Below are positions 2,897 to 33,400 of a stretch of 64,000 nucleotides of DNA, one piece after another. The stretch lies in NCBI GenBank assembly GCA_028826165.1, contig JAPDFW010000090.1:1-64000 (forward strand). Reading direction: 5' to 3'. The notes under the pieces were generated by a model. That model did not search any database. It was not told where the DNA came from and saw only the letters and a list, made by a program, of their open reading frames with translations. The position numbers and the translations under genes were made by a program. The stretch is from Anaeramoeba ignava BMAN (lineage: Eukaryota > Protista > Anaeramoebae). The number at the start of each line of letters is the position of its first letter. Within the stretch, counting starts at the first letter, position 1.

Positions 2897-2912
2897 AGAG
2901 TTGTTCATAAAA
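2897..2912 (+). repeat. Left terminal inverted repeat of the transposon
   Basis: AGAGTTGTTCATAAAA; a second copy of the core CTTGTTCATA follows at 2917-2926. Confidence 0.9.
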
Positions 2913-2990
2913 ATCACTTGTTCATAAGATTTTTTTTAATGATTTTTTTCTTTTAGATTTTGTTTTTTTTTGGCCGATTCAATCCAGTTT

Positions 2991-3093
2991 GTTCACAGAA
3001 CGGTTTTTTGTTCACAGAACAGTTTTTTGTTCACAGAACGATATTTGTTCACTGAACAAACTAGGTTCACTGAACAAACTAGGTTCACTGAAC
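2991..3093. repeat. Subterminal array of six palindromic GTTC-ACW-GAAC motifs (18-19 bp period)
   Basis: GTTCACAGAAC at 2991, 3010, 3029; GTTCACTGAAC at 3047, 3065, 3083. Shares the GTTCA core with the TIR. Confidence 0.9.
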
Positions 3094-3233
3094 AAACTGG
3101 AAGGATTCAACAAGAAAAAATAAAGAAAAAAAAATAAGAAAGTTTGTTGGTTTAGAAAAAAGAGACTTTGAAAAAAGAAAAGAAAAGAAAAAAAAAGAAA
3201 AAAAAATTGAAAAAGAATTCCAAAAAGAAATGA

Positions 3234-6200
3234 TTAAATTTTTTGATCTTTTAATTGATTAATCAAATTTTGGATGTTATCTTGAGAAAGCATTCTCATA
3301 TCCACTTTCGATGTTTTTTCATCTTCTGTTTTTTTTAGAACAGAATTATTTTCCACCTTTTTCAAATTTGGAGAGGAATATTCTGATTTGTTTTGATTTG
3401 AATTCTTCATCTTTTCATAAAGTAATATCGATGCATTGTTTGTGAGATATTTTATTGGATTGCGGACAAAAAAAACTTTGGAATCATCGAATACATACCA
3501 CTTACCATTTTCCTTATTCCTCCATAACGCAATGTAATGCCCCTCCTTCAATGAAATCCCCAAATGAAGAATCGCACCTCTTAAAGAATATTCTTTGTTA
3601 TCTTTATTGATTGATTTATTGGTTTCATTTAATAAATCTTTTTCTTTTAAATTATTAGATTGATTTGTTTCAATAGATTCAATTCTTTCATCAATTTGAT
3701 TTGTTTCAATAGATTCAATTCTTTCATCAATTTGATTTGTTTCAATAGATTCAATTCTTTCATCAATTTGATTTGTTTCAATAGATTCAATACTTTCATC
3801 AATTTGATTTGTTTCAATAGATTCAATTCTTTCATCAATTTGATTTGATTGAGAAGATTTTGATGAGAAAACTAATGAAGATGAATAAAGTGATTGATTG
3901 TTTTCATTTAATAAATCTTTTTCTTTTAAATTATTAGATTGATTTGTTTCAATAGATTCAATTCTTTCATCAACTTCATTCAATGGAGAGGATTGATTTG
4001 AAAGAATGCAAGGAGGTGTTGAAATATCTTGAATATTATGAGGAATCCAATTTTCTTCTCCATATTTCTGTAAATCAATTTTGTCGGGAATCACCACAGG
4101 CCAATTTTTCTTTCCAGTGCTTCCATCTTTTTTCCACCAAAATCTTTCTAAATGAATCCAAAAAAAATGAGGAAAATCTGAAATGAAGAATTGTTGAGAT
4201 TGGGATTTTGGGGTAATCTCTTCTTTTTTTGGAATATCTTTCGGTGATGTAACTTCATGAGTTTTCGATTGGTGCTTTCTTCCTTTTCTTCTTCTTTTTG
4301 TTTTTTGTGATAGTTTTTCCGTCTTCTCAGGAGTTAAAGAAATTTCTTTTTTGGTTGAGGATGTGCTTTTTTCGTTAGAGTTCTTTTTTTTTTGTTTTTT
4401 ACATTCTTCACAAATCATCAAATTGTCTTTGTCAGGATGAATCAAAGAGAAATAAGAATCAATTAAATCAAGAAGATGAATTGGAGTATTTGCAACTGGA
4501 GGATGTAAGAAGATATTCAAGCTGTAAAATTCTGTTTCAGTTTCAGACCAATGACCACATGCTCCATAAAAAATCTTCTTCTTTTCCAATCCACAATGTG
4601 CTCTAATCAAACTCAGATTTTCTCTTATCGGAATTTGAATTTTTTTGTTAAGTGTATTATTGTAAAGTAATAACGAGTCAATCCGGAGATTATCTAACAA
4701 AAAATCCAGAAAATCATGAGCATCTTTTTGAGAGGGATTTGGACCATACATTTTTTTAAGTCCCTTCAAATCGTTTTGTAAGGATACGAGATATGAATAT
4801 GGAACAGTCTCTTTTTCGGTTTTCATCTGTTGGGAGATGGACAAAATTTTTTCAACTAAAGATCCTTGAGGATTGAAAAATTCTCCATTTGTTCTCAGGA
4901 AGAGTTGAAGAACAGAAATCATGAAACAAGAGTTGCAAGGATTTTCTATTCCCTTTAAAGATAGATTACTTTTTTGAGAAGGACCATCACTTTTCAAATC
5001 AGAGAAAAAATTGAGTGCAGGTTTTTTGGGAGAATTACTTTGAGAGAGAGGATTAGAAGGAGGTTCCACAATCATTTTTCGTTTCTTTGATTGTTTTGGA
5101 GAGTTTTCCTTTGATGATCTATCTGATTTTGGAGAGTCTTGAATGAGTTCAAACTGATCATCTTCGTCCATTTGAAAGAAGTTGGGTTTGTTGCATTTAG
5201 ATTTTTTTTTTTCGGGGGTTGTAGTTCTTAAAGGAGTTAGTTGAATTTTTAGATTTGTGAGTGCGGAACAAATTACAAATAATAATCGGAAATCGGTCAT
5301 ATTTCCTCTGAATTTAAACATCATGATGTTGAATTTTTTAAGGCGTCCATAGTAGTTTTCCACAAGAACTCTATCTGAAGAGAGTTTGATATTATTGTGG
5401 ATTTTTTCTTGAGTAAGGCCGGCTGAAGTTTTTTTAGATGGTAATACAGCCTTACATTGTTTTTGAATGCCTTGAAATCCAGAGTCAGCAAGAATCTGAT
5501 ATCTTTTTTTCTTTTTTTTCCCATTTTTATCACGAACTATCTCCTCACATTTATCAGACCAATCCGTAATATCCCATACAATCTTGTCATGGTTTTTTCC
5601 CGTTACTCCTGGCACACAATCCATCATGAGACCATTTGGGGAGTGGATTGTTAAACTTTTGAAGCAATACTTCTTGTGCTTTCCTGAGTATGTCAGTGTC
5701 CTTTTCGTTTTATTTTTTGGTCGTTGTATTTCTTGAACAGTGGCATCCACTACAGCCATCGCTTTTGGATAATTTGGAAAACCGATATTATTCTTTTCTT
5801 GCTCTTTCTTTGATATCCAATGTATTTGATTTTTGAGCTCATTATGAATCGGAACTAAAAATTTTTTGAATAAGCTATTCATACTTGCTCGAGGAATTCC
5901 AAAAAAAACTTCCATTGAAGAAAACGGGCAATAGGAATAAAAGTAAGTAAGGAAAGCTAACCAAATATCTTCGGGAGATAAAATTCTTTTTGGTGCTCGT
6001 TGATTAAAAGGAGAAATGATATCCTTCACATATTGAAAGCAATCCAAAAAACCTTCAAAAGTATATCCAGTCAGTACTTTCAATAACAGAGGATAAGTTG
6101 AGGCTAATTTCCAATTGATTCGAATTCCATAAGGATTTTGAGGATCAATAATTACTTTATCCTCTTCTAAAATATCATCGTGCCCAAATTCATAGACTCT

Positions 6201-6278
6201 AGATCTTATAATCTTGCGATTCGTTTTAAAATGCTGAATCATTTCAAAAATTTTTTTGTCAATTTGAAATGGTTTCAT
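3234..6278 (-). CDS. DDE_Tnp_4 (Harbinger/ISL2EU-like) transposase fused to a C-terminal ubiquitin-specific protease (peptidase C19) domain
   Basis: Transposase part: HTH-like LSPEDIWLAFLTYF..FSSMEVFFGIPRASMNSLF; VVDAT (D178), YSGKHK, GKNHD, LADSGFQG (D265), RVLVENYYGRLK (E307). USP part: Cys box GIENPCNSCFMISVLQLF (C451), QKDAHDFLDFLLD, CEEC, His box YSLRGAILHLG...GHYIA (H914)...WYVFDDSKV (D931), ASILLYEK. Intronless and uninterrupted. Confidence 0.92.
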   Translation of the reverse strand: MKPFQIDKKIFEMIQHFKTNRKIIRSRVYEFGHDDILEEDKVIIDPQNPYGIRINWKLASTYPLLLKVLTGYTFEGFLDCFQYVKDIISPFNQRAPKRILSPEDIWLAFLTYFYSYCPFSSMEVFFGIPRASMNSLFKKFLVPIHNELKNQIHWISKKEQEKNNIGFPNYPKAMAVVDATVQEIQRPKNKTKRTLTYSGKHKKYCFKSLTIHSPNGLMMDCVPGVTGKNHDKIVWDITDWSDKCEEIVRDKNGKKKKKRYQILADSGFQGIQKQCKAVLPSKKTSAGLTQEKIHNNIKLSSDRVLVENYYGRLKKFNIMMFKFRGNMTDFRLLFVICSALTNLKIQLTPLRTTTPEKKKSKCNKPNFFQMDEDDQFELIQDSPKSDRSSKENSPKQSKKRKMIVEPPSNPLSQSNSPKKPALNFFSDLKSDGPSQKSNLSLKGIENPCNSCFMISVLQLFLRTNGEFFNPQGSLVEKILSISQQMKTEKETVPYSYLVSLQNDLKGLKKMYGPNPSQKDAHDFLDFLLDNLRIDSLLLYNNTLNKKIQIPIRENLSLIRAHCGLEKKKIFYGACGHWSETETEFYSLNIFLHPPVANTPIHLLDLIDSYFSLIHPDKDNLMICEECKKQKKKNSNEKSTSSTKKEISLTPEKTEKLSQKTKRRRKGRKHQSKTHEVTSPKDIPKKEEITPKSQSQQFFISDFPHFFWIHLERFWWKKDGSTGKKNWPVVIPDKIDLQKYGEENWIPHNIQDISTPPCILSNQSSPLNEVDERIESIETNQSNNLKEKDLLNENNQSLYSSSLVFSSKSSQSNQIDERIESIETNQIDESIESIETNQIDERIESIETNQIDERIESIETNQIDERIESIETNQSNNLKEKDLLNETNKSINKDNKEYSLRGAILHLGISLKEGHYIALWRNKENGKWYVFDDSKVFFVRNPIKYLTNNASILLYEKMKNSNQNKSEYSSPNLKKVENNSVLKKTEDEKTSKVDMRMLSQDNIQNLINQLKDQKI
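3662..3843 (-). repeat. Coding 36-bp tandem repeat (QIDERIESIETN x5) inside the USP domain
   Basis: Five near-identical 36-nt units, plus a duplicated ERIESIETNQSNNLKEKDLLNE block at ~3625-3690 and ~3904-3970. Confidence 0.9.
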
Positions 6279-6567
6279 GCAAAAAATAAGAAAAAAAACA
6301 AATTAAGAAAAAAAATTAAGAAAAAAAATAAAGAATTAGGGAATAAAATTTTTATTTTTTTTTTCAAATAAAATAGATTGGAAAAAAGAGATAGATGATT
6401 GAAAAAAAGAGATAGAAGAATTAGAAATAGAGATAGAAGAATTAAAAATAGAGATGAAAATTCTCAAAAAAAAAAGCTATGAACAGGATTCGTTCTCTGA
6501 AAGGAATTGAACTAGCGAATTTTGAATTGTCTGTAATTCAAAATTACAATGGAAAAAAAAAAAAAAA

Positions 6568-6583
6568 TTTTATGAACAAGTCT
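6568..6583 (-). repeat. Right terminal inverted repeat of the transposon
   Basis: TTTTATGAACAAGTCT. An internal TATGAACAG copy lies at 6478 and an 11-bp perfect hairpin AATTTTGAATT-N6-AATTCAAAATT at 6518-6545. Confidence 0.9.
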
Positions 6584-8170
6584 ATTAAATTAAATCTATT
6601 CTCATTTTTTATATTTATATGTTTAATATTTAAATAATAAAATAATTAAATCTAAAACATTAAATTATTATTTTAAACATAAAATTGAATATTAAATTAT
6701 ATTTAGAAATAATTTATAAATTAAATATTAAATTAAATCTATTCTCATTTTTTATATTTATATGTTTAATATTTAAATAATAAAATAATTAAATCTAAAA
6801 CAATAAATTATTATTTTAAACATAAAATTGAATATTAAATTATATTTTTAAATTAATTTATAAATTAAATATTAAATTAAATCTATTCTCATTTTTTATA
6901 TTTATATGTTAAATATTTAAATAATAAAATATTTAAATCTAAAACATTAAATTATTATTTTAAACATAAAATTGAATATTAAATTATATTTTTAAATAAT
7001 TTATAAATTAAATATTAAATTAAATCTATTTTCATTTTTATATTTATATGTTAAATATTTAAATAATAAAATATTTAAATCTAAAACAATAAATTATTAT
7101 TTCAAACATAAAATTGAATATTAAATTATATTTTTAAATTGATTTTTAAATTAAATATTAGATTAAATCTATTCTCATTTTTATATTTATATGTTAAATA
7201 TTTAAATAATAAAATAATTAAATATAAAACAATAAATTATTATTTTAATAATAAAATTAAGTATTAAATTATATTTTTAAATTGATTTATAAACTGAATA
7301 TTAAATTAAATCTATTCTTATTTTTTATATTTATATGTAAAATATTTAAATAATAAAATATTTAAATCTAAAACATTAAATTATTATTTTAATAATAAAA
7401 TTAAATATTAAATTATATTTAGAAATAATTTATAAATTAAATATTAAATTAAATCTATTCTCATTTTTATATTTATATGTTAAATATTTAAATAATAAAA
7501 TATTTAAATCTAAAACAATAAATTATTATTTTAATAATAGAATTAAATATTAAATTATATTTTTAAATTAATTTATAAATTAAATATTAAATTAAATCTA
7601 TTTCCATTTTTATATTTATATGTTAAATATTTAAATAATAAAAAATATTTAAATCTAAAACAATAAATTATTATTTTAATAATAAAATTAAATATTAAAT
7701 TATATTTTTAAATTGATTTATAAATTGAATATTAAATTAAATTTATTCTCATTTTTATATTTTTATGTTAAATATTTAAATAATAAAATATTTAAATCTA
7801 AAACAATAAATTATTATTTTAATAATAAAATTAAATATTAAATTATATTTTTAAATTGATTTATAAATTGAATATTAAATTAAATTTATTCTCATTTTTA
7901 TATTTTTATGTTAAATATTTAAATAATAAAATATTTAAATCTAAAACAATAAATTATTATTTTAATAATAAAATTAAATATTAAATTATATTTTTAAATT
8001 AATTTATAAATTAAATATTAGATTAAATCTATTCTCATTTTTTATATTTATATGTTAAATATTTAAATAATAAAATAATTAAATATAAAACAATAAATTA
8101 TTATTTTAAACATAAAATTAAATATTAAATTATATTTAGAAATAATTTATAAATTAAATATTAAATTAAA
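6584..8170. repeat. ~143-bp tandem satellite (~11 units); its first unit begins at ~2790, left of the transposon
   Basis: TAAATCTATT(C/T)TCATTTT recurs at 6591, 6734, 6878, 7021 and onward. 2790-2896 matches the same unit (TATTTAAATCTAAAACAATAAATTATT). Confidence 0.9.
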
Positions 8171-8297
8171 CTTATTAAAAAAAAGGAGAAAAAGGGAAAA
8201 AATTTTTTTTCGTCTTTTCTTTTAATTAAAAAAAAAAAATAAAAAAAATAATTTTTCATTTTCTTTTCCAATCAAAACAAAACAAAAAAACAAAAAA

Positions 8298-8717
8298 ATG
8301 AGTGAACAAAAATTAGCAGATATAAGAAAATTATTAGAATTAATGAACTCAGCCGAATTAGGAAAAAGTGTATTTGTGTCAGTGATACAAAATTTCCGAC
8401 AAATGTATGATGATGTCCCATCAGAATTTTGGGACGAAGTTGAAAAAGAAGTGAATTATGATCGGTTGATTGAATTGATTATTCCAGTTTATGATAAAAA
8501 CCTGTCACATGAAGTAATTAAATCTGCAATTGAATTTTATGAAACAAAAAACGGTCAAGAACTTGTCAAAGCTTTGCCTCAAATTTCTCAAGAATCAATG
8601 GCTGTCGGAAACACTTGGGGAATGGAACTTGGTCAACTCGTCGTAGAGAAGTTGTCCTTGTATCAAGGTGATGATGATGGTGATGATGATGGTGATGATG
8701 ATGAAGATGACGATTAA
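8298..8717 (+). CDS. DUF2059-family protein (bacterial-type) with acidic tail
   Basis: IRKLLELM...FWDEVEKEVNYDRLIELIIPVYDKNLSHEVIKSAIEFYETKNGQELVKALPQISQESMAVGNTWG matches the DUF2059 pattern (Y...fs..El..l..FY.Tp.Gqk.....P.i.qe.m..gq.W). Intronless. Confidence 0.85.
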   Translation: MSEQKLADIRKLLELMNSAELGKSVFVSVIQNFRQMYDDVPSEFWDEVEKEVNYDRLIELIIPVYDKNLSHEVIKSAIEFYETKNGQELVKALPQISQESMAVGNTWGMELGQLVVEKLSLYQGDDDGDDDGDDDEDDD

Positions 8718-8861
8718 ATTCTTTTTTTCTTTTTTTCTTTTTTTTTTTCTTCTTCTTCTTCTTTTTCTTGATTGAAATTTTATTTTCAATCTCTTTAAAA
8801 TTCAAATCTTTAAATTAAACCAGCTTAATTGGAAACAAAATCATTTTCAAATTCATTTATA

Positions 8862-9115
8862 AAATCAAAATTTAAAATTAAAATTAAAATTAAAATTAAA
8901 ATTTAAAATTAAAATTAAAATTAAAATTAAAATTAAAATTAAAATTAAAATCAAAATTAAAAATCAAAATTAAAATCAAAATTAAAATTAAAATTAAAAT
9001 TAAAATTAAAATCAAAATTAAAATTAAAATTAAAATTTAAAATTAAAATTAAAATTAAAATTAAAATTAAAATTAAAATCAAAATTAAAATTAAAATTAA
9101 AATTAAAATTAAAAT
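8862..9115. repeat. (AAATTA)n microsatellite
   Basis: Hexamer run, directly visible. Confidence 0.9.
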
Positions 9116-9151
9116 TCCAAAATCATTTTTTCATTTTTTTTCTTTTCAAAA

Positions 9152-10924
9152 ATGAATGAAATTATATTTTTTGGTTCAAATGAAGCACCAAAACTTATCA
9201 AAAACAAACCAAATGAAATAACAAAATCAATTCAATTTAAATTTGAAAATGAAAATGAAAATGAAAATGAAAATGAAAAACAAATTAAACAAATTTCATC
9301 AAGTTACTATTCAACAATTTTCCTTTTTAAAAATGGAAAAGCAATAGAATATTTAAATGAAAATGATTCAAATCCTGAAGAAATTCAAATTGAAGAAAAT
9401 ATTCAAAAAGTAACTGTTGGTTTTGAAAATGAAGCTATTTTAACAATAAAAGGAAATGTATTTGCTAAAGGAGAAGATATTAATCCAAAAAATCCAAAAG
9501 AATTTATCAATATTTCATCATTAATTGAAGATACAAATGATAGAATAATTCAAGATGTTGTTTCTGGATACACTTCGATTTACTTATTAACTTCAAATCA
9601 AAATGCTTATGGAATTGGTTCAAATGAATATGGTCAACTTGGTTTTGATTCTGAAACACTTTATAAAACAGAAAAACCAATTTTAATAATGAAAAATGTT
9701 TCTAAAATATTTTCAGGAAATACTTCAAATCATGTTTTTCTTTTAAATTCAAATCAAGAATTATTTGGATGCGGAAATAATTTATTTGGCCAACTCGGAT
9801 TAGGAGAATCAAGAAAAGAATATATCACAAAATTAACCAAAATCCAAAATATTCCAAAAGGTGAAATAATTGATATTCAATCTGGATATTATTATTCAAT
9901 AATGTTGATTGAAGATGGAAATGAAAATCCAAAAAGAAAACTTTATTCATGTGGATATTACGAAGATAATGGACTTGGCAAAGATGAAAATACTTATGAA
10001 TTTACTGAAATCAAATCATCTTTATTTGAAAATGATGATAATAATATTGATTTTTCTGTTGGTTATGCTCATACTTTGATTTTAACTTCCAATTCAAAAT
10101 TAATAGGATTTGGATATAATTATTATGGTCAATTAGGAACTGGAGATACAAAATATCAAAGAATTCCAATTCAAATTAAACTTCCTAAATTAAGATTTAA
10201 TGAAAATATTTCTAATTATCATATTTATTGTGGTTCTTATAAATCATTTCTTTATTATTCTCCTTCTTTTTCTAATCTTGAAGAAGATTTGATAAAATTA
10301 TTTGAAAGAAAAGAATTTTGTGATATTTCATTTAAAACAGAAAATGGAGAAATAATTGAAGCTCATAAATTAATATTGAAATATAGATTAAATCAAAATC
10401 AAAATGAAATTGAAAAACTTAAAGAAATTATTTCAAATAAATCAATTAAAGAATCAAATCAAATATTTGAAATGATTTATTCAAATAATTCCAAAATAAA
10501 TCCAAAATTATATTCTGAAATTAAAGAAATTATAAATTCAAATGAAAAAATTGAAGAAACAATGAAAAGAATTTATTTAAATGAAAATGAAAATGAAAAT
10601 GAAAAAGATTTTATAATTGAAAGAAAAGAAAAACAATATAAATTTCCTAAATTAATATTAATAATGAGAAGTGAATTATATCGAGGAATGTTTTTATCTG
10701 TAACTGAAGATACTTCTAATAAAGTTACAGATTATAGTGAATTAAGTAATAAATCATTTCAAATATTTGAATATTGGATTTATTCAAATCAAATCAAAGA
10801 TGAAATCCAAATTACACAAGAAATAATTGATGAATTAGAAACAGGAATTGATTATTTTCAATTAAATCAAACAAATCCAAATTTATTTGATTTATTAATT
10901 AACAAATTTAATAATCAAAATTAA
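9152..10924 (+). CDS. RCC1-repeat protein with C-terminal BTB/POZ-like domains
   Basis: RCC1 repeats (GIGSNEYGQLG, GCGNNLFGQLGLG, SVGYAHTLIL, GFGYNYYGQLGTG); BTB-like FCDISFK..IEAHKLIL and FPKLILIMRSELYRGMF...FQIFEYWIYS. Confidence 0.9.
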   Translation: MNEIIFFGSNEAPKLIKNKPNEITKSIQFKFENENENENENEKQIKQISSSYYSTIFLFKNGKAIEYLNENDSNPEEIQIEENIQKVTVGFENEAILTIKGNVFAKGEDINPKNPKEFINISSLIEDTNDRIIQDVVSGYTSIYLLTSNQNAYGIGSNEYGQLGFDSETLYKTEKPILIMKNVSKIFSGNTSNHVFLLNSNQELFGCGNNLFGQLGLGESRKEYITKLTKIQNIPKGEIIDIQSGYYYSIMLIEDGNENPKRKLYSCGYYEDNGLGKDENTYEFTEIKSSLFENDDNNIDFSVGYAHTLILTSNSKLIGFGYNYYGQLGTGDTKYQRIPIQIKLPKLRFNENISNYHIYCGSYKSFLYYSPSFSNLEEDLIKLFERKEFCDISFKTENGEIIEAHKLILKYRLNQNQNEIEKLKEIISNKSIKESNQIFEMIYSNNSKINPKLYSEIKEIINSNEKIEETMKRIYLNENENENEKDFIIERKEKQYKFPKLILIMRSELYRGMFLSVTEDTSNKVTDYSELSNKSFQIFEYWIYSNQIKDEIQITQEIIDELETGIDYFQLNQTNPNLFDLLINKFNNQN

Positions 10925-30467: not shown

Positions 30468-33400
30468 TCAATTTTTGGACTTCTCCTTTTGAATATACTC
30501 GACAATCAACTTTAATTGGGACATTTTCAAAGTTTTAGCCAAACGATTGCGAATAAAATCGTCACCAATAACTTTGTAAACATCAATAAAAGTGAAAATA
30601 ACGGCCTTTCTGATTTCAGAGTTTGACTTATCAAGATTAGATTTGAGCAAGGGATAAATAGTGTCGAGATTTTTCTGGAGAAGATCTTTTTGGAGATGGT
30701 GACTTAGCTTTCCAAAAAGAGTGATACTTGCAAGAAGAACAGAATTTGAATCCGATGTCAAAAAAGAAGAAATTGAAGAAAGAGCTTTTGAAGGCTCGAG
30801 TACTGGGAGAACGGGGAGCATAAGATCGAAGGTTGCGGAGACGGTTGATTCCTGCGAGAGCGCGCAAATGCGGAAATATTCGTGGAGAATCTCTTTTGTG
30901 TAGATTTTGAAGTAGTTTTCTTGATGAGTCGAAAGAGAGACGACGAGACTCAAAATTTCTTTTTGCAGTTGCGGCTCGGAAACAAAGTATATTTTGAATA
31001 GTTCGAACAAAACAGGGGAGAAGGCGGATTCCCAGAAGGAAATGTTTTTGGAGGTAGAGTATGAAAGAAGGGAGGCGAGAGCAGAAGCACGGTTGAGGGG
31101 GTCGTTGAGCTGAAGAAGAATTTTTTGCGCGTGATTTTGGTCTTTGTCGCTGGACTCAATACCAGCATCGCCTTCGTTCTCGTTTGTGTGTGTTGTGCTG
31201 TCGTCGGCGTCTGAGATGTTTGATTTGATTGAGTTCAGAATCTGCGATGTTTCTGTGGAAAGAATCTGTTTGGTCACAATTTTTGTTTTTTGCGACAGCA
31301 CAACGCGTTTTGTGCGGTTTTTAACAGGCTTTGTCTTCTGGGCTTTGGTGAGCAAAGCAAGGAAGTTTTTGCGGTCATCTTTGGATTGCGATTGGATCTG
31401 TTTCATGAGCTCGTCCTCGTTTTTTTCCTTGAGAATCTGCAGGATTTTCTTGTTTTTCTTCTTGATCTCAAGAGTGGGAATTTTGACCAAAGGACGCAAA
31501 GCGGAGATGATATTTTTTGTGGCAGAGGCCTCGCGGAAATAGTCTGATTTCTCAGCAGAGAATATCTTGATCATATAGTCGAGAACAAGCGGTTTCGAAG
31601 TGGGCGAGGATTTTTCGAGCGTCTTGACAAGAGCAGGCGCGAGAACTGAGATGCCAAGCGTGGTTCGCATGAGATCGGATATGTCCTCGACCGTTTCCTT
31701 GATCTGGTCCTGCTTGTCGTCAAGAAGAACAATGGCGTTTAGTGCGACCAAAATGTTGGTCTGGAAATTTTTTGTGTAGTTGTCCAGCATCTCTCGGAGA
31801 ATTTCCAGACAAAGAACCCGAGATTTCGTCTGGTTATGCGCCATCGCACGAGCAACCGCGGAAAGAGCCGTCTTGAACATCTTGCCGTTTGCGAGCTCTG
31901 CGTTGTTCTGCTGCTTTGAAATTTCGAGCAAACTTTGGAGACCGTTAATCTTGGAAGAAAAATCGCTCGAATTTACCTCCGTAATAAGTTTCTTGAGCTG
32001 TTTGTCCTTGGTTTTTTTCTCCTCTGATTTCTTGCGCGCCAACGGATGCGCCCGTTTAACAACGAGCGTCGGACTGGACGACTTATGCTGAAGAGTCTTA
32101 TTTTTTTCCTTAGTGCTCGACACTGTTGTTGATGAACGATTTTTGCGGTTCTTTGTTGGCTGGTCCTGATTCACAGAAGACTCGCTCATCACGCGCGGCA
32201 TCGAATCGCTCGTCTGCTTTTTTGTCTCCGTTTTGGGCACAACCTTCGGTTTCAGCGTTCGGGCTCTGAGCACGGATTGCTTGTTTACAAGACTGCGTGA
32301 TCGCTGGCTTGTTTTTGTCTTTGTGCCCGTGGTACTCGTCTCCGCTTTGATCACCTCGTAGATTTTATTGCGCGGATTGTTGTCTGGATGCTTCTGTCCC
32401 AATATAAGTTTTTGCAGTCGAGAATCCATTTTCTCAAAAATTTTCCGCGAATCTGACACGCTATGATTAGTTAACTCCCAGAACGCCCGGCTCCCCAATC
32501 GCCGCGTCTCTGCGTCTTTGCTCTTCAGCGCGCACTCCACCACTTCGCTCATCTCATTCACGCAATCTTCTACCTCGTTACTGCCCCAAGTGTGCAGGAT
32601 TAGTCGCCCGTATCCCGCTAACTGCTTCTCAAATTCGTCGTTCTCTCCGTTCGTCATCATCTCCTTAATCTCCCGCGCTATCTCCCCCGACGCCGTGTTC
32701 TTGATCGTCGTCTTGATCGCCCAATCTCCACACTCTTTTATTTTCCCATCAGAATTCGTCAAAATTCTCACTAATCCCGGCAAAATATTTTTTGCGAATA
32801 TCCCTCCAAAATTCTTCCCAAGCTTCCGTGATAAATGCGCTACTACAAACGTTGTGTGCTTCACTACTGCTTTGTGTTCGTCCGCGAGAAGTCCCCCAAA
32901 TATTCCTTCTAGTTTGTTTAATAGCCTGGGAAATTCTTCATAATTTTTCACTGCGTTTCCGTTTAAAATTTTATGGAATTGAAGAATTGCATGTTTTCGT
33001 AATTCCCAATCTTCTTTTTCCAAGTTTTGTTTCATTTCCTCGATTTTTTCTTCGAGTTCTTGGATTGAATTAAACTTTTTTGTATTTTAACAATTTTTTT
33101 TATATAAATATTAAATATAAATATAAATTTTGATATAAATTTATTTTTGAATTTATTTTTAAATTTGTTTTTAAATTTATTTTTAAATTTATTTTTAAAT
33201 TTATTTTTGAATTTATTTTTAAATTTATTTTTAAATTTGTTTTTAAATTTATTTTTAAATTTATTTTTAAATTTATTTTTGAATTTGTTTTTAAATTTAT
33301 TTTTGAATTTATTTTTGAATTTATTTTTAAATTTATTTTTAAATTTATTTTTAAATTTATTTTTAAATTTATTTTTAAATTTATTTTTAAATTTATTTTT

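Follow-up and report, generated by a model that had tools for sequence, protein, structure and literature searches.

A 64,000-nucleotide stretch of the Anaeramoeba ignava genome (assembly GCA_028826165.1, contig JAPDFW010000090.1, positions 1 to 64,000; hereafter the window) carries at 2897-6583 a cut-and-paste DNA transposon of 3,687 bp, in which a DDE transposase and a ubiquitin-specific protease (USP) are encoded as one protein by a single open reading frame (ORF). Judged from its ends, its protein and its relatives, this is probably an autonomous, recently mobile transposon of the IS5/PHIS type whose tethered protease would be a captured host-type deubiquitinase acting in cis. It is present at two sites in the genome, and metagenomic assemblies hold a diversified family of proteins with the same pair of domains.

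Anatomy of the element and its fusion protein

The element stands out from its surroundings in GC content (30% vs 6-9% in the flanks). Its features, together with the evidence for each, are as follows.

2897-6583, minus strand: whole IS5/PHIS-type DNA transposon, 3,687 bp (terminal inverted repeats, copy comparison)
2894-2896, unstranded: target-site duplication ATT, left copy, with a 5-bp TATTA reading possible (empty site in the 143-bp repeat units)
6584-6586, unstranded: target-site duplication ATT, right copy (empty site)
2897-2912, plus strand: 16-bp terminal inverted repeat, 3′ end of the element (15/16 match; genome pattern search)
6568-6583, minus strand: 16-bp terminal inverted repeat, 5′ end of the element (15/16 match; genome pattern search)
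2903-3088, plus strand: eight subterminal copies of the repeat core GTTCAY, mostly spaced 18-19 bp (~2 expected per strand across the whole element)
6587-8200, unstranded: host 143-bp AT-rich tandem repeat, the insertion locus and source of the empty site (repeat comparison)
3234-6278, minus strand: single ORF of 1014 aa, transposase-USP fusion (ORF list, Pfam)
5829-5996, minus strand: HTH-like stretch, helical, preceding the core, with approximate limits (Pfam HTH_Tnp_4 matched only in relatives)
5253-5750, minus strand: DDE_Tnp_4 catalytic core with D178 (5745-5747), D265 (5484-5486) and E307 (5358-5360) (Pfam, alignment, model)
5202-5212, minus strand: A11 run opening the linker, 11 here giving the fused frame, 10 in the assembly of the copy on contig C67 (copy comparison; transcript-derived ORF in the fused frame)
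3417-4952, minus strand: USP/C19 domain with C451 (4926-4928), H914 (3537-3539) and D931 (3486-3488) (Pfam, structure matches)
3624-3994, minus strand: 36-nt tandem repeat, an in-frame insert in the USP upstream of the His box, with a further 99 and 513 nt in frame in the C67 copy (copy comparison)

The original prediction, made from the sequence alone, described a 3.7-kb element bounded by terminal inverted repeats (TIRs) and a target-site duplication, and this was borne out. The element splits one unit of a 143-bp AT-rich tandem repeat, and the units to its right (downstream) are empty sites carrying a single ATT; ATT was therefore duplicated at this insertion. The same letters fit equally well to a 5-bp TATTA duplication with 15-bp TIRs. 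At the second locus, on C67, AAT follows the right end of the element and a tandem paralogue of the flanking gene provides an empty T-AAT-A site. Several related families in the A. ignava genome also seem to end immediately before AAT or ATT, and for this reason we favour the 3-bp reading. All eight subterminal GTTCAY copies fall within 190 bp of the left end and are likely to be binding sites for the transposase. Other transposon families of the same lineage (upstream of loci L041 and L047) apparently lie in or beside the same 143-bp repeat family; their positions suggest a landing site common to several families of the lineage.

As had been predicted, the 1014-aa ORF is the only one of at least 80 aa within the element, and neither a Myb/SANT nor a YqaJ protein is present. 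Pfam matches it to DDE_Tnp_4 at aa 177-342 (E 3e-26), to DDE_Tnp_1 (E 8e-7) and to UCH at aa 443-954 (E 7e-25), the last falling where a UCH/C19 domain had been expected (aa 440-960). The expectation for the N-terminal part held for DDE_Tnp_4 and failed for HTH_Tnp_4, which is unmatched here and is matched in a sister family of the protein (E 5e-8). The catalytic residues that had been named are all present: the triad D178, D265 and E307, invariant or nearly so across 69 aligned transposases, and in the protease the Cys box with N446 and C451, the QxD box Q517-x-D519-A520, the His box with H914, and D931. A confident model of the transposase part (pLDDT, the predicted local distance difference test, 91) has DDE transposases and integrases as its best structural matches, all of them weak (best E 4e-3). 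For the protease part, all Foldseek matches listed are USP-fold (best E 4.5e-7), starting from a low-confidence model (pLDDT 56). In sequence this part matches USP2 and USP15, and UCH is the only Pfam family that it matches.

Copies and relatives within Anaeramoeba

The element was found a second time, ~99.8% identical and with different flanks, on contig C67 of A. ignava, so that the search for dispersed copies called for by the original prediction was successful, with one end of the copy short of its outer ~13 bp. In NCBI this copy is KAJ5075180.1, labelled 'thap domain protein'; Pfam gave no THAP match on the near-identical protein of the window. Its ORF differs from that of the window by 6 substitutions, two 1-nt homopolymer deletions and the in-frame repeat expansions listed above. 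The two copies are independent, very young insertions. A chance fusion to a neighbouring host gene was rejected, since the USP lies within the TIRs and in frame and has travelled with them to the C67 site, in keeping with its earlier description as cargo of the mobile unit. The site of the C67 copy is where the two units of a tandem gene duplication meet (95% identical; L031:2293-3550 and 8102-9365), and an AAAATC microsatellite lies beside it. A candidate third copy on contig C21 was also rejected: its flanks are the same, it lies at the contig end, and identity falls from 99% to ~72% in element and flank alike. This is consistent with a poorly polished overlap of the end of C21 with the start of C91.

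The weak point of the fused frame is the A11 run that opens the linker, which is A10 in the C67 assembly. The fused frame is nevertheless supported by three observations. Firstly, a EukProt ORF (P0002), judged by its name to come from a transcript assembly, runs in frame from the transposase C-terminus through the linker and the Cys box (aa 319-666); 344/348 of its residues are identical to the window protein and it carries two C67 alleles. Secondly, a second family of the same genome (C134), 36% identical to the window protein, is uninterrupted in one frame from the DDE region to the Cys box. Thirdly, the metagenomic fusions described below keep the DDE-USP order in an unrelated group of hosts. 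In C134 a UCH match with stops was recorded beyond the sequence examined, in the part to which the His box belongs, and low-complexity sequence overruns the USP.

One branch of the same transposases in A. ignava ends in an Ulp1-type protease, two of its members giving weak Pfam C48 matches.

C35:575605, C98:19713, C74:180400 and C117:143576 (L041, L042, L046 and L047): Ulp1/C48-type fusions with His-Asp/Asn-Gln-Cys motifs, the C35 and C98 elements being 97% identical copies

Two copies of a further related element (C126:288148 and C137:617845; L053 and L054) have different flanks after AAT, and their transposase is extended by a long tail of low complexity, in which no protease was recognised within the part examined. 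At C61:371327 (L035; P0003) a tyrosine-recombinase ORF lies immediately upstream of a truncated close relative of the window transposase, and NCBI merges the two into one 744-aa model. The genome also contains multicopy USP ORFs of 302-306 aa (C128:88078, C105:158640, C1:1084687, C80:249344, C24:736899, C59:7413, C48:41695 and C96:45721). Several of these belong, after C134, to the best in-genome matches to the N-terminal half of the USP (E 4e-6 to 5e-4), and an exchange of USP cargo involving them is possible.

Metagenomic fusions and known systems

A profile search of 1.8 billion representative sequences returned mostly stand-alone transposases of ~300-500 aa, with A. ignava, A. flamelloides and an oomycete as the named hosts. 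Two of the matches carry a USP, namely P0142 (DDE then USP) and P0064 (USP then DDE). Repeating the search from P0142 gave ~22 DDE_Tnp_4+UCH clusters in ENA and Logan assemblies, mostly 620-710 aa long. All 19 members of this family that were aligned (26-54% identity to P0142 over the USP) have the catalytic Cys and His, and an Asp is kept in the His box. In two pairs of members synonymous sites are near saturation (pS 0.73-0.75) with a pN over the USP of 0.40-0.47, and by this measure the domain is evidently under purifying selection in these relatives. Homolog searches by word matching, run once with the whole protein and once with the DDE region, are of low sensitivity and subject to a length filter; they returned only the protein itself. 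A scan of JGI metagenomes gave no match, nor did the ESM Atlas for P0142.

Within this family, the element encoding P0200 is mobile, as five different 5′ flanks are joined to one terminus beginning GGA(G/C)TT. The bases before this terminus are ATT, AAT, ATT, GTT or TTT, and the terminus itself is reminiscent of the AGA(G/C)TT of the window element. Just upstream of the P0200 start codon is a TCACTTCATTTT motif, which we take to resemble the trichomonad initiator. The P0200 element is seemingly ~5 kb long with inverted subterminal repeats, and downstream of its DDE-USP gene is a 161-aa ORF with no Pfam match (L070:2232-2717). Inverted arrays of a ~43-nt unit lie on both sides of another DDE-USP gene, P0218 (L080, L081). 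The reversed fusion P0064/P0164 (L065:568-3651) is 1027 aa long with the USP N-terminal to the DDE domain; TIRs were looked for at the P0064 locus and none were found. It may have arisen by in-frame insertion of a transposase into a USP gene of the host, or it may be a domesticated fusion.

DDE transposase trees place P0064, the metagenomic family and the fusions of Anaeramoeba apart from one another. A single clade of the Anaeramoeba and metagenomic fusions was rejected by the approximately unbiased (AU) test (p=0.0008), with the caveats that an LG+G4 model and a quick tree were used, that the group was defined after the tree had been seen, and that multiple losses remain compatible with the result. 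The Cys boxes of the Anaeramoeba and metagenomic fusions also differ in type. Because the fusion transposases fall apart in the tree and one clade is rejected, repeated capture of a USP is suggested as the simplest reading.

The transposase fits the PHIS signature, D(19-29)K(29)D(18-40)D(11-19)P(18-28)R(3)E (PMC4122938), with one spacing off by one: its residues D178-K200-D231-D265-P280-R303-E307 are spaced by 21, 30, 33, 14, 22 and 3. The 16-bp TIRs and the AT-rich targets T-ATT-A and T-AAT-A are likewise those of PHIS/IS5-like elements. PIF/Harbinger and ISL2EU elements have in common with the window element a DDE_Tnp_4 core with the PHIS signature and an AT-rich target. However, PIF/Harbinger elements duplicate a 3-bp TWA, as opposed to ATT (or TATTA), and have a second, Myb/SANT ORF where the window element has one ORF only. 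ISL2EU elements differ in their 2-bp AT duplication, TIR starting GG, THAP domain and YqaJ ORF, none of which the window element has, and Spy elements insert at AAATTT without a target duplication, whereas ATT is duplicated here. In its ends and size the element resembles bacterial IS5 and Pangu, which has an ANT duplication, TIRs of 11-40 bp starting AG or GG, a length of ~3.5 kb and two ORFs (Han et al. 2015, PMC4482050): the window element has ATT and AAT under the 3-bp reading, and a TIR of that length starting AG. Unlike Pangu, whose transposase has no other domain, it has one ORF, a USP fusion and an HTH-type N-terminus. The element is best filed as IS5-like/PHIS without assignment to a named group, with ends resembling those of Pangu/IS5.

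The original prediction knew of no described PHIS element with a USP, but the pairing itself is on record: Bao, Kapitonov and Jurka (2010) mention in one sentence a Trichomonas vaginalis protein, XP_001314237.1, that combines pfam01609 and Peptidase C19, and propose that such proteases act on DNA-repair factors (PMC2836005). That protein resembles ours in its two domains, its IS5-like transposase, its metamonad host and the functional hypothesis attached to it. Gladyshev and Arkhipova (2009) are reportedly its source. It differs in that no ends, target site or copies are given for it (PMC2836005), and the comparison is by description only. Cysteine proteases that remove ubiquitin or SUMO are also carried by Ginger1 (OTU, Ulp1), Mutator (Ulp1) and Helitron HLE2 (OTU, UCH, VTD) elements, whose transposases, however, are unrelated to that of the window element (PMC2836005, PMC11417382, PMC9741609). 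Among these, UCH was recorded by HELIANO as cargo of Helitron-like elements (PMC11417382), and K48 and K63 chains are substrates of the Helitron VTD deubiquitinases, for which the authors propose the protective role that is favoured below for the window element (PMC9741609). In these three papers we found enzyme assays for Helitron VTD only and no test of an effect on transposition. No element of this kind described with ends, copies or family breadth was found in the literature searched, Repbase and subscription journals lying outside that search. The pairing of transposase and USP was thus already known, if little studied; newly added are the full anatomy of an element, a family that is mobile and has diversified in other protists, and evidence for more than one capture.

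Elsewhere in the window, a 139-aa ORF at 8298-8717 (plus strand) matches DUF2059 (E 8e-15), a family described from bacteria, so that lateral transfer is possible. An intronless 855-aa HEAT-repeat ORF at 30468-33035 (minus strand) is CLASP-like by eye, with a GC content of 46% vs 5-25% around it.

Role of the tethered protease

If the element behaves as its family does, one polypeptide would bind the TIRs and subterminal repeats, and its DDE triad would excise the element and insert it at T-AWT-A sites. The USP would be a captured host-type deubiquitinase retained intact by the element; we infer its activity and all later steps. In all the fusions examined the protease shares the ORF of the transposase, at one end or the other, an arrangement suggestive of action in cis. 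Most likely it would remove ubiquitin chains, degradative or remodelling, either from the transposase or the transpososome or from chromatin and repair proteins where donor and target DNA are broken, and in either case transposition or its survivability would be raised. Within this explanation, self-protection from proteasomal/p97 turnover is favoured by a modest majority of our weighting, removal of ubiquitin at break sites is a substantial minority reading and action on silencing factors a marginal one. A counter-defence role for the USP is plausible.

Several observations weigh against an active, selected deubiquitinase on an autonomous element. The USP is divergent, with a first zinc-ribbon CxxC that is one Cys short relative to C134, and it holds long low-complexity inserts; its predicted model is poor. 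The protease appears dispensable for the transposase family, because most close relatives have none. Only two independent copies were found. Finally, P0002 begins at aa 319 and diverges from the sequence at aa 666; the transcript check proposed across the linker is therefore answered for read-through at the junction and not for a full-length fusion mRNA.

Four other explanations were weighed. The best placed, although unlikely, is action of the protease in trans against silencing or immunity factors of the host, namely proteins of chromatin or of the small-RNA pathway that are under ubiquitin or SUMO control; the fusion would then do no more than save coding space. USP and Ulp1-type proteases do recur on several transposase lineages of one genome, as silencing through ubiquitin or SUMO predicts; the constant placement of the protease within the transposase ORF, however, favours a tethered role. 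A useless or inactive passenger, captured from the host as a fragment and now decaying, is a rather improbable reading of the USP. Such decay would fit the repeat expansions within the domain, the degenerate state of its zinc ribbon, the frameshift that the C67 assembly shows in the His box and the low-complexity sequence overrunning the C134 USP. Yet the catalytic boxes are all intact, the Cys box is kept at 36% identity with C134, the expansions remain in frame, and an independent metagenomic family conserves the triad.

Still less probable are two products, in which slippage or frameshifting at the A11 run would yield a short transposase, with the fusion or a separate USP as a minor or regulatory form. 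This would account for the C67 assembly, where A10 and a substitution at window position 5168 create a TGA that overlaps the start codon (ATG) of the USP part. However, the transcript-derived ORF with the same allele (D371N) has three Lys codons and remains in frame, for which reason A10 in C67 points to a homopolymer error, and the frames of C134 (from DDE to Cys box) and the metagenomic family are uninterrupted. Very improbable, lastly, is a domain that is not a deubiquitinase and has as its substrate a ubiquitin-like modifier (SUMO or NEDD8) or its own polyprotein: faint Peptidase_C98 (USPL1-like SUMO isopeptidase) matches in the metagenomic family, below the cut-off, and the Ulp1-type proteases of sister elements speak for it, but the window protein matches UCH and canonical USP structures only.

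The tethered, cis-acting deubiquitinase thus remains the preferred explanation. A broader proposition, which we regard as tentative and on balance doubtful, is that a protist-wide, single-ORF IS5-like lineage captured active deubiquitinases at least two to three times, and an Ulp1 protease once more, the tethered enzyme in each case countering ubiquitin-dependent restriction of the transposase.

Reports of ubiquitin and SUMO proteases on transposons go back at least to 2010. Being 3.7 kb long with a single ORF, defined ends and a known target, and with C451A as a substitution to separate its two activities, the present element makes the role of such proteases directly testable, and a deubiquitinase that stabilises the transposase to which it is tethered could be instructive for designing transposase tools. 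That captures of USP and Ulp1 recur within a single transposase lineage and a single genome suggests a real selective pressure on metamonad transposons from ubiquitin-based control of their transposases.

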